Assembly (NCBI RefSeq): GCF_964188315.1
Contig: NC_135667.1
Location: forward strand, 20,398,001-20,462,000
Length of the DNA: 64,000 nt
Source: Podarcis muralis
Taxonomy: Eukaryota
Reading direction: 5' to 3'
Shown here: piece after piece, positions 39,722 through 43,405 of the stretch
How the letters are laid out: every line of letters starts with the position of its first letter
Position numbering within the stretch: the first letter of the stretch is position 1
The notes under the pieces: generated by a model
Told to the model about the DNA's origin: nothing
Databases searched by the model: none
Seen by the model: the letters and a program-made list of their open reading frames with translations, nothing else
Program-made: the position numbers and the translations under genes

Positions 39722-40691
39722 CTACTTCTCCAGGGGCGCATAGTTCAGCAACTTTTCAATCAAATCCACGTGTGACAGGAGCATCCTCCGACAGCAGTAG
39801 CGCTTCAGGCCAAGGGCGTCCAACGCATCCCTGAGAGAGGGAACGGAAAAATGAGTGGGTGGTCTCAAGATTTTCTCTCTCTCCCTTTCTCTCCTGACTC
39901 GGATTGCCAACCTTTCTGCGGCCCTCTGCTCCTGTGCCTTTCATCAGCGGCCTGCTCTGGACTGGAGACACAGACAAACATCCATGTCCTCTGTACTGAG
40001 TTAGCCAGTTTTATCCAATTTATGCCGCAATCAGAGGGCAGCAGCCCTGTATAGGGAAATGTGTAATGTTTTATTATGTTTTTGTATATGCTGGAAGTCG
40101 CTCAGAGTGGCTGTGGCAACTCAAGTCAGATGGGCGGGATACAAATAAAACAACAATAACAACAACAACAACAACAACTGGAAGGAGTCCAGAAGCCATT
40201 TATAGAGATGGGGGAAAGCAGACCACTAAAACGTTACAGGTACAATGGTACCTCAGGTTAAGTACTTAATTCGCTCCGGAGGTCCGTTCTTAACCTGAAA
40301 CTGCTCTTAACCTGAAGCACCGCTTTAGCTAATGGGGCCTCCTGCTGCCGCTGGAGCACGATTTCCATTCTCATCCTGAAGCAAAGTTCTTAACCCGGGG
40401 TACTATTTCTGGGTTAGCAGAGTCTGTAACCTGAAGCGTATGTAACCCGAGGTACCACTGTATACTAAAAGGTTTCATCCAAAAAAGTCATGTCATAAAA
40501 ATTATTATTATCTGTGATAACAGGATGGGGGGCTAGAGAGAAAGACAAGGTAGAAATCCTAGAAGATACAGCAAAGAGGCAAACCTGTGGACTCACCCTT
40601 CTGTGTATTCCGCCTGCAAGAGGCCCAGGTAGGCTTCCCACTTGTTGCCCACAACTTTCCCGCAGGTGAAGCACCGAACTGGGATGATCAT
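39722..40691 (-). CDS. POLR2L: RNA polymerase I/II/III shared subunit RPABC5 (RPB10), complete 67 aa
   Basis: join on minus: 40691-40597 (95 bp) + 39830-39722 (109 bp), [71 protein letters not shown] has the CxxC and CCR zinc motifs. The intron is present, so it is not a retrocopy. An acceptor at 40703-40704 lies 11 nt upstream of the ATG. Confidence 0.96.
40060..40180 (+). mobile_element. L2-like LINE 3' tail with (CAA)n in the POLR2L intron (approximate)
   Basis: gctggaagtcgctcagagtggctgtggcaac...gggcgggatacaaataaa(caa)n. Confidence 0.55.
40243..40460. mobile_element. Tc1/mariner-type MITE, complete, in the POLR2L intron
   Basis: caatggtacctcaggtta...gtaacccgaggtaccactg with TA TSD; near-identical to 1-176. 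Confidence 0.9.
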
Positions 40692-41299
40692 TGTGAGGTG
40701 GCCTAAAAAGGAATATATTTTGGGGAGGGAGAAACAGGAAGAGAGGCAAGTCACCCATGTTTCTTCCCTCTCTTCCCACCAAACCTTCCTGGGCTACCTA
40801 TTCTTAGTGTTGCAGGAATTTCTCCGTTAACATTACTTTACAGCAGGGGCCCCCAACTTGAATAAAATATTGTGGGGGTCCAGGTAAGTCCTGCCCCCAC
40901 ATAACTGATCACAGGATGCAGTGCACCCACACTGTTTGAATGGGAATACTCATCAACTTTGGGGGCGCCAGGCCCCTCAAATATTTTATTGTGGGGGACT
41001 CCAGCTCCCACCAACCCCAGCTGGCCTGGCCAATGGCCAAAGGTGATAGAAGCCTTAGGAACCCCCCCCCCCCCATCACCATCATCCAGCCACGGGTTAA
41101 CTGCTCTTGCTGCAAAGGTGATCGGGAGGTAAAAAGCCCATACATCTTAGGTTAAGGCCACGCCCTCACCCCCGGCTTTTACGCTTGTAAACAGCTTCAG
41201 GGAAGGCTGAAATTCAACAGGTGCTGCTTCCCTCTGTTACTGCGTCTTCCCCACTCTCTCTACAAGCTTCACCGGGTGAATCTCTGCCTCTCGTGCCCT

Positions 41300-41900
41300 T
41301 GGAGCTGTCCCGAACAGCCTTTCGCTCCCCTAAGCGCTTCCCCCATTCCTGCTTCCCCCTTCGGGAAGTGGGGGCGGCCCTCGCCCTCCCCGGATCTCTC
41401 ACTCCCCGGCCCCACACATCCACTTTCTCCCGCCAGCTCGGCGCACCCCAGGCCTCCCTCCCTCCTACTTGCCATCTTTCCCCCTCGCCCTCCTCCCTGG
41501 CCGACCCTTCTCCCCGCCGCTCCCCACCTTCCTCTCGGCCTCGGCCGCCTTCCTCTCTCCCGGGAGTCCCTCGTGGTTCTGGCGCAGCAGCGAGGCCGAG
41601 GGCTGGCTTCTTCCGCTGCCCGCAAGAGGGAGACACAAGCTCCGCCGCCGCAGCAGCAGCAGGAGGAGGAGCCCCGACGGCGACGCCGCCCCTTCCTAGC
41701 GGAGCCCAAATTTCTTCCCCTTATAAGCGGCAATCGATCTGCCAGAAGGTCATCTTGTTGTTGCTTGCATCCTCGGGATCTTCGCGTTTATCCAAGTTTT
41801 TTTCTTTCTCTCCGCCCCTTTATCTTTCTGTGGATTTACGCGTTTATCCAAGTTTTTTTTCCTTTTTCTCCGCCCGCAGATAGATCTTTTCTGTTCTTTC
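41300..41900 (-). promoter_or_regulatory. CpG island: probable POLR2L promoter and non-coding first exon
   Basis: CpG-dense; TATA-like TTATAAG at about 41721; GC boxes; candidate minus-strand donors near 41527 (AAG|gtgggg), 41401 (gtgaga) and 41169 (gtgagg). The exact exon cannot be resolved. Confidence 0.6.
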
Positions 41901-41966
41901 TTTCTTTCTTTCTTTCTTTCTTTCTTTCTCTCTCTCTTTCTTTCTCTCTCTCTCTCTCTCTCTCTC
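41893..41966. repeat. (TTTC)n(CT)n microsatellite
   Basis: Read directly; homopyrimidine tract. Confidence 0.9.
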
Positions 41967-43299
41967 ATCCCGCCTGAGGGAGAATTCTGGAGAACTCGGA
42001 AGTTTGCTTGGTAATTTCATACATTTTGCTTGGCGCAAATATAGGCATTTGCCCCCCAAATTTGGAATTTTTGCGCATGCGGTTTAAATTTTGAGAGTGA
42101 TGCGCATTCTCTCTCCCCGAAATAATGATACCTGGCCTGCCTTACAGGGTTGTTGTAAAGATTGTGGCATATTTATATATATAGTGGGTTGATAACAGCC
42201 ACCATCTCAAACAGGGGTTTATTCCGAGGTAACGGTCCTCGCTTGTGAAATCCTGAGCGCTGCCCCGTTACTTTGCCGTGCCCCCGCTTCCCGCAACTGC
42301 TATTTGACAAACTTTCTGTCTACCACACGGGGGTCTTCATATTGCAAAGCGCACGGCTTCCCCCAAACAATCCTGGGAACTGTAGTTTACCTTTCTCATC
42401 GCTACAATTCCCAGCACCCGTAACAAACTACGGCTCCCAAAATTCTTCTGAAGGAGAGAATGTTCTTTAAACGCCTGTGATGTGAAAGGGTGAATCAGGA
42501 TTGAATGCAGGTGCGCTGGAATTTTGACGTGTGAACGCTGCTGGAGAAAACTCGTGTGCACGGGGAGCACAAAACCCACAATAAACACCCACTTGGAAGC
42601 TGGCAATGTGGAAGGTACAGAAGCGAAGTACTTTACTCCCGAAGTTGCTCCCAGAGTAAACTACTCCTGCACAACAGGACGTGCTCTCGAAAGTGCTTTG
42701 AGCAGAGTTGGAAATCTGAGGCTGTCTGTCACGCGCAGCCTGTGTTGGCGTTTACTTAGAATTGTAAACTTGGGAGGGACACGGAGGGTCATCTAGCTCA
42801 ACCCCCCAGGAATATTTTTGCCCAACGTGGGGATGGAACCCACAACACCCTGAAATCCAGTCTCTGCAAGCATGTTTTAACACCCTCCCTTCCGCGGGGG
42901 CATAATTTGGAAACGTCTCGAAAGCAGAAAAAGAAGTGATTCTCCAATCCCATACAAGTCTACTCCGAAGTAAGTCTCATTGAGTCCAATAGGACTTGCC
43001 GTACTGAGACAGGAATGGAACAGAATCCTGAGCCACACGCTTCTGGTGTTAATGCGGTACAACTGAGTCGCTTTTCATTGTCCTTTTTTGCGGGGGAGGG
43101 GGAAGGTTTAAACAAGAACGGGGGTTCAAATCCGACTGGACGTCTTTGTCTCGAATAGAAACCCGTTTCCCTCCCAGAGCCCCCTGGGCTCCTCCCCACA
43201 GTCTCAAACACGCCCCACATTACTGCCCCCCTTTCTCCCCTCCCATTTCCTTCCCCCTGTCCCGTGCTGGAATTTGCTCCCCCTCCCTTTCCATCCTGC

Positions 43300-43405
43300 A
43301 TCCCATCAGAGGACAAGCAACTTGGAAGAGGTCTAGGTGTCTGGGAGGGGGGCTCCCGCCCCAAATCCGCACTCCCGCCCCAAAGTCTCCTGCCCCGAGA
43401 CCAAG
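43300..43405 (+). other. Probable non-coding first exon of the TSPAN4-like gene (5' end approximate)
   Basis: Strong donor CAAG|gtgagg at 43406 after GC boxes (ctcccgcccc twice); pairs with the acceptor at 45913. Confidence 0.55.

Follow-up and report, generated by a model that had tools for sequence, protein, structure and literature searches.

We analyzed a 64,000-nucleotide (nt) stretch of the genome of the lizard Podarcis muralis (contig NC_135667.1, positions 20,398,001 to 20,462,000 of the forward strand; hereafter the window, whose own numbering is used throughout), in which POLR2L, the gene for the RNA polymerase subunit RPB10, lies head-to-head with a tetraspanin gene of the TSPAN4-like lineage. 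We consider it probable that this expressed gene is type A of two old POLR2L paralogs of vertebrates, that the POLR2L-tetraspanin pair was duplicated as a block, and that mammals lost the type A copy. Under this scheme, type A would have kept the ancestral protein within a block of PRMT1, TSPAN4-like and AKT1S1 found in sharks, amphibians, crocodilians and squamates, while type B would be the protein of mammals and birds and a separate intron-containing gene in a frog, a turtle and the cobra. Mammals would have lost type A together with TSPAN4-like, and the duplication of the pair as a block would most likely have taken place in the early vertebrate genome duplications. An earlier reading made from the sequence alone (the sequence-only reading) had pointed to this gene pair; its observation was confirmed, and its interpretation was partly supported.

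Structure and expression of the POLR2L gene

POLR2L was found to consist of three exons on the minus strand, one non-coding and two coding. The non-coding exon 1 (41528-41600) is separated by intron 1, which lies in the 5' untranslated region (UTR) (40703-41527; CT..AC on the plus strand, that is GT..AG on the minus strand), from the start-codon exon (40597-40702), which was placed by translation, Pfam and RNA and has its ATG at 40691. This exon codes for M1 to G32 and is followed by intron 2 (39831-40596; phase 2, GT..AG, placed by sequence and an RNA junction) and by the last coding exon (39722-39830), which supplies the G of codon 32, residues D33 to K67 and the stop codon at 39722-39724, so the coding parts are 40597-40691 and 39725-39830. 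A putative 3' UTR would extend over 39515-39721, with an AATAAA signal, read as TTTATT on the plus strand, at 39533-39538. The product has 67 amino acids (aa), and its conceptual translation is identical to the database proteins P0131 and P0091:8-74. Comparisons of POLR2L were made with database proteins matching the conceptual product (P0091:8-74 = P0131; P0140:12-78 = P0271), and exons were searched singly. The start-codon exon covered positions 1-30 of the Pfam RNA_pol_N profile (PF01194) with 50.6 bits and the last coding exon covered positions 31-58 with 52.2 bits, against a cut-off of 26.9. The zinc-binding cysteines of RPB10, CxxC (7, 10) and CC (44, 45), are intact in the translations (CFTCGK and RYCCRR).

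Two stranded RNA sequencing (RNA-seq) runs from this organism, together with a set of RNA contigs, supplied the RNA evidence, which covered the region 40100-46099. At the coding intron, 73 and 75 reads in the two runs passed from 40597 into the letters of 39801-39830, with loose ends at 40596, and RNA over the start-codon exon had a depth of about 54 on one strand only. The intron in the 5' UTR was supported by 53 and 58 reads and by one RNA contig, all of which joined 40702 to 41528 (raw joint 40701/41527, cut +1). Depth over exon 1 was about 15; molecule ends lay at 41572, reads reached up to 41598, and the contig continued for 70 nt beyond the joint, which places the transcript start near 41598 or slightly beyond. 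Letters 41635-41679 were skipped as a repeat when RNA reads were placed. These junctions for both introns confirm that the intact POLR2L at this locus is transcribed and correctly spliced. The description from sequence alone of an intact, intron-containing gene for 67 aa on the minus strand was thus borne out by the translation, by both halves of the Pfam match and by the RNA junctions.

Two further observations concern this gene. Intron 2 holds, at about 40240-40462, a very high-copy interspersed repeat that was covered by RNA-seq on both strands at a depth far above that of the exons, with many loose read ends leading into other genomic copies. At 40653, all RNA reads and the RNA contig had an A>G change (plus strand) that was absent from the DNA contigs of run X1. 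This synonymous change (GTT to GTC at V13) most likely reflects a difference between individuals.

Two types of POLR2L in vertebrates

We distinguished two types of POLR2L protein, type A with K-V-V-G and L-L-S-H (V13, S51) and type B with K-I-V-G and L-L-A-H (I13, A51). The 67-aa protein of the window is of type A and was identical to that of lamprey, shark, skate, frogs and alligator (UniRef 'n=36 Vertebrata'); type A was also found in the turtles Dermochelys (P0113) and Chrysemys (P0082). Taking K-V-V-G and L-L-S-H as the signature of a special reptile copy was rejected, since lamprey, sharks, amphibians and alligator have these 67 aa unchanged. The sequence-only reading had called these residues variants, a description that does not hold for a sequence identical to that of lamprey. 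Judged from the proteins compared, the type A residues are the ancestral vertebrate state and the mammalian residues are derived.

The type B protein, on the other hand, was 100% identical to a chain in 183 polymerase entries of the PDB, including 5flm and 5iy6, which we take to be bovine and human RNA polymerase (Pol) II, and it belonged to the UniRef cluster 'n=361 Euteleostomi', which carries an ostrich name. L-L-A-H was present in all six of the mammal entries inspected. Outside mammals, intact type B genes split at the same codon were found in the cobra Naja (L006), the snapping turtle Chelydra (L011) and the frog Mixophyes (L012), with introns of 3.9, 4.0 and 1.3 kb, respectively. The frog assembly (GCA_038048845.1) holds both types on different chromosomes, type A on CM076013.1 adjoining a PRMT gene (L002) and type B on CM076012.1 (L012); their coding sequences were 77% identical and were split at the same codon. 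Both types were likewise found across species within snakes (type A at L005, type B at L006) and within turtles (type A in P0113 and P0082, type B at L011). The coding sequence of cobra type B was 80% identical to that of garter-snake (Thamnophis) type A, and the flanks of the two genes were not collinear and had in common only dispersed repeats. The occurrence of types A and B across frogs, turtles, snakes, birds and mammals indicates that tetrapods inherited two POLR2L genes, of which mammals keep only type B. Given the type B sequences of cobra, turtle, bird and frog, a type B copy would be expected in this lizard as well.

A non-coding block was found to be common to the turtle and cobra type B loci (L011:18559-18710 and L006:19570-19732). 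It was 74% identical over about 160 nt, collinear and without an open reading frame (ORF), and it sits about 2-3 kb past the type B stop codon. A further POLR2L of A type was found in the gecko Gekko kuhli (CM122944.1; L008:11351-11551). It is intact and intronless, with its coding parts contiguous, and was 87% identical in nucleotides to the coding sequence of the window gene. This copy is probably a retrocopy; the name of its source protein carries the tag UNVERIFIED_CONTAM.

The tetraspanin partner of POLR2L

The transcript of the tetraspanin gene begins on the plus strand with a non-coding exon (43333-43405), whose last position was joined to 45914 (GT..AG; raw joint 43403/45912, cut +2) by 8 and 9 reads on the strand opposite to the POLR2L reads. 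Position 43405, at which the sequence-only reading had ended the pair, is the splice donor of this exon. In an RNA contig, about 71-73 nt precede the joint. The start-codon exon (45914-45993, ATG at 45925), defined by its ORF and the joint, was 96% identical to residues 1-24 of Rhineura tetraspanin-4-like, and it continues in the RNA into the exon at 46747 (loose end). The remaining coding exons extend over 46747-52273 (46747-46938, one at about 47.6 kb, 48728-48829, 49219-49353, 51196-51285 and a last exon with the stop at 52273), and the exons carry a Pfam Tetraspanin match.

Identity of the exon at 46747-46938 to tetraspanin-4(-like) of Pogona and Rhineura was 98-100%, and overall identity to whale TSPAN4 was about 56%. 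In a tree of 33 sequences, a tetrapod TSPAN4-like clade (100/98) stood apart from a group of mammal TSPAN4 and catshark tspan4a (98/92), and the approximately unbiased (AU) test rejected joining mammal TSPAN4 to the TSPAN4-like clade with p = 0.001. On this sequence comparison the tetraspanin of the window is TSPAN4-like and not the TSPAN4 ortholog. The tree and the AU test exclude the scenario in which a true TSPAN4 was relocated as a block, so the case that would have overturned the sequence-only reading, a single POLR2L beside a relocated true TSPAN4, was not found. The placement of the window tetraspanin agrees with the TSPAN4-like lineage named by Huang et al. 2010 (PMC2965184). A word search with the turtle TSPAN4-like protein returned no true sauropsid TSPAN4 among its proteins.

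The tree does not settle the TSPAN4-like orthologs of sharks and fishes, since a bamboo-shark 'tetraspanin-4' (P0184) fell at the base of the TSPAN4+TSPAN9 group and not with tetrapod TSPAN4-like, and fish proteins named tetraspanin-4, -4b and -9 formed one long-branched clade. We also noted that catshark tetraspanin-4a isoform X2 (P0186:1-95) and Tupaia TSPAN9 isoform X1 (P0262:1-95) have a long N-terminal extension in common (..SPSLDSKD..PKGSKYVVFYLDLSF.FLLE..), which suggests an old alternative first exon of TSPAN4 and TSPAN9.

Neighbouring genes

On the other side of POLR2L lies PRMT1, on the plus strand and tail-to-tail with it. Its last coding exon and stop codon were placed by alignment at approximately 35637-35723, and the stop codons of the two genes are about 4 kb apart. 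ORFs at about 21.7-35.7 kb on the plus strand aligned by tblastn to PRMT exons of frog, skate and shark loci with an annotated PRMT, the upstream exons had Pfam matches to PRMT_C and PrmA, and the window protein scored higher to PRMT1 than to PRMT8 in comparisons with solved structures. Beyond the tetraspanin gene, AKT1S1 (PRAS40) was located on the minus strand at 54053-61499 by tblastn against the alligator locus (L007), with a PRAS_NT match (E = 1e-30) at 60885-61499, and TBC1D17 begins at about 63.7 kb. The alligator contig carries TBC1D17, AKT1S1, the tetraspanin and POLR2L collinearly with the window, and its AKT1S1 has both PRAS_NT and PRAS. Two frogs, a skate and a shark have an annotated PRMT as the gene convergent with POLR2L, and a PRMT gene likewise adjoins POLR2L in three more cartilaginous-fish assemblies for which gene tables, without DNA, were used. 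The garter-snake locus (L005) carries the same POLR2L as the window, with a coding sequence 89% identical at the nucleotide level. PRMT1, AKT1S1 and the collinear alligator contig give the pair a 19q13.33-type setting, in line with the proposal that it lies on a paralogon arm other than 11p15.5. A comparison of the neighbours of all POLR2L copies had also been proposed. For type A it gave PRMT1, TSPAN4-like, AKT1S1 and TBC1D17; for type B in cobra, turtle and frog it gave no informative neighbour within 10 kb.

Origin of the two POLR2L genes

The mammalian type B gene lies head-to-head with TSPAN4 and type A lies head-to-head with the old sister of TSPAN4, so a block duplication would be the simplest history. 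In lamprey, the tail of POLR2L faces that of a tetraspanin with a CD151-type motif in its CCG exon. By this motif the tetraspanin is CD151-like, and in human, CD151 is also tail-to-tail with POLR2L. The POLR2L-tetraspanin pair may be older than the vertebrate genome duplications. Both types were found in frogs and amniotes, and sharks showed type A only. Since the 10-kb flanks of type B outside mammals hold no informative gene, the origin before the duplications is one that we infer.

Several points weigh against a block duplication of the pair with both copies kept. The POLR2L gene of amphioxus (L010, CM027633.1) is compact, about 415 bp, and lies between two cation-efflux (ZnT-type) genes, with neither a tetraspanin nor a PRMT gene within 10 kb at the one locus examined. 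No tetraspanin exon was found within 10 kb of the type B genes L006, L011 and L012, where the flanks were searched by tblastn with TSPAN4 of whale, bat and catshark, TSPAN4-like of turtle, CD151-like ORFs of lamprey and every ORF of the window, and were scanned for the motifs of a tetraspanin's start exon and CCG exon. The position of type B between CD151 and TSPAN4 is therefore documented only for human, from the literature, which gives the order CD151, POLR2L, TSPAN4, CHID1, AP2A2 (PMC5024517). Non-mammalian type B is equated with mammalian POLR2L because the proteins are identical, which amounts to two common substitutions and so to slender grounds for orthology, and teleost proteins combine K-I-V-G with L-L-S-H. 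Finally, coding identities across POLR2L genes ranged from 74 to 89%, tracking the GC content of third codon positions (GC3), and synonymous sites were saturated. The comparison of synonymous divergence proposed with the sequence-only reading thus yielded identities that, because of this saturation, cannot date the split between types A and B.

The sequence-only reading had left two alternatives, that reptiles keep two POLR2L genes or that different lineages kept different ohnologs. Two kept genes is the better supported of these, both types being present in one frog assembly and across snakes and turtles; within reptiles this evidence comes from comparing species, and a type B copy was neither looked for nor seen in this lizard's own genome. 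Under reciprocal loss, this lizard would hold type A only, and the same role would be filled by type A in the lizard and by its ohnolog, type B, in mammals, a case of hidden paralogy. The loss of one of two near-identical paralogs is common, mammals did so, and type A alone was seen in this lizard's genome, where no genome-wide search was made. However, type B is present in birds, in a turtle and, intact and with the same intron, in the cobra (L006), so the squamate ancestor had both genes and the loss would have to be specific to lizards. We therefore regard reciprocal loss as a rather unlikely, though not negligible, account. A still less likely one is that a later small-scale DNA duplication of type A gave rise to type B, which came to lie beside TSPAN4 by chance or in mammals only, with no duplicated block. 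The bare flanks of the non-mammalian type B genes and the unpaired amphioxus gene would fit this history. On the other hand, a chance head-to-head landing next to the sister of type A's own head-to-head partner is very unlikely. Moreover, the regions are recognised paralogous blocks, with AP2A1/AP2A2 and PRMT1/PRMT8 as further pairs and PRMT8 near TSPAN9. The catshark sequence already stands on the TSPAN4 side of the split between TSPAN4 and TSPAN4-like, and lamprey POLR2L already adjoins a tetraspanin of the same cluster. Huang et al. 2010 saw TSPAN4-like as probably an independent duplicate and not an ohnolog (PMC2965184), which favours a small-scale origin and weighs against the duplicated block; the POLR2L partner and the PRMT1/AKT1S1 context of the window gene (tetraspanin-4-like / tspan4b) argue for an ohnolog block instead.

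Two further explanations appear very improbable. If there were one POLR2L, moved as a block with a true TSPAN4 ortholog, the name 'tetraspanin-4' that NCBI gives to the alligator, Pogona and Chelonia genes would be apt. Against such a move stand the tree and the AU test, the identity of 56% to whale TSPAN4 compared with 98-100% when its best exon is set against squamate TSPAN4-like, and the presence of types A and B together in one frog assembly. The least probable of all is that contamination or faulty assembly produced the type B loci of cobra, turtle and frog, even though the type B protein equals the human protein and one gecko POLR2L record is flagged UNVERIFIED_CONTAM. The three loci come from independent assemblies (two chromosome-scale records and one 4.8-Mb scaffold), their introns differ in length, and their coding sequences are 80-84% identical to each other. 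In addition, the cobra flanks hold repeats common to the garter snake, and turtle and cobra share the collinear non-coding block.

We also considered a more far-reaching idea, that most non-mammalian jawed vertebrates carry two RPB10 genes that differ at only two aa and have persisted for several hundred million years because neither can stand in for the other, for instance in tissue, stage or dosage via distinct promoters and settings, and that mammals, perhaps also birds, were later reduced to one. We put this forward as a tentative suggestion that is itself unlikely to hold in full.

Relation to known systems

The window pair resembles the human pair of POLR2L and TSPAN4 at 11p15.5 in that the same two gene families lie head-to-head, and human POLR2L also has a non-coding exon and two coding exons. 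The partner in the window is, in contrast, TSPAN4-like and not TSPAN4, the tail-side neighbour is PRMT1 and not CD151, the surroundings are of 19q13.33 type (AKT1S1, TBC1D17), and the protein, with V13 and S51, is two residues apart. The transcript starts in the window are also 1.7 kb apart, compared with a few hundred bases in human. The RPB10/RpoN family (PF01194) has been solved in mammalian, yeast and archaeal polymerases. The window protein is a full-length match to it, with its cysteines intact and 97% identity to the mammalian chain, and the differences, V13 and S51 in place of I13 and A51, are of no functional note. Since 65 of the 67 residues match the chain of solved mammalian polymerases, the product would be expected to enter Pol I, II and III. 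Types A and B would resemble other ohnologs that were lost in mammals and kept elsewhere, in being two old copies, probably on paralogous blocks, of which one was lost in a lineage. They differ in that POLR2L is a core subunit of three nuclear polymerases and that the two products are almost identical.

POLR2L is usually regarded as a single-copy gene whose product is essential to all three nuclear RNA polymerases, and the mammalian gene serves as the vertebrate reference. Our evidence indicates that, of two old paralogs, mammals hold the derived one, that the copy with the ancestral protein lies in a separate conserved block (PRMT1 / POLR2L / TSPAN4-like / AKT1S1), and that non-mammalian tetrapods have both copies. 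For orthology calls, this means that a lizard, frog or shark 'POLR2L' beside PRMT1 would not be the one-to-one ortholog of human POLR2L. The TSPAN4-like lineage would gain a linked marker favouring an origin by genome duplication, and the two genes would provide a simple natural setting in which to study why two near-identical copies of a core polymerase subunit persist. Both POLR2L genes are already present in automatic annotations, and it is the interpretation, not the genes, that is new. A literature search for POLR2L paralogs in vertebrates or for synteny of POLR2L and TSPAN4 gave no paper describing the paralogy; a mention of RPABC5 in PMC2871058 concerns fungi.

The interval between the divergent genes

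The RNA junctions of both genes establish that POLR2L and TSPAN4-like are divergent; their transcripts start near 41600 and 43333, which leaves about 1.7 kb between the two 5' ends. The interval between the starts (41601-43332) is enriched in CpG, with an observed/expected ratio of 0.71 compared with 0.09-0.18 immediately outside, in line with the 1.5-2 kb CpG-rich interval that had been described from the sequence. A classical GC-rich island is confined to about 41200-41760, and POLR2L exon 1 lies inside this GC- and CpG-rich stretch; the gene would be driven by a CpG-rich promoter. A bidirectional promoter requires opposite-strand starts no more than about 1 kb from each other, and the starts in this lizard lie farther apart. 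A CT microsatellite (41885-41976) and a high-copy repeat (about 42300-42400) also lie between the two starts, which argues that there is no tight shared promoter. In the alligator, about 0.4 kb separates the annotated ends of POLR2L and the tetraspanin. Immediately 5' of the TSPAN4-like start we identified a block conserved among squamates (43174-43302, plus strand), which was 84% identical over 130 nt to the garter-snake locus (L005, 6518-6642), where the matching block has the same position and orientation relative to POLR2L. From its conservation and position, this block is probably the core promoter of TSPAN4-like.

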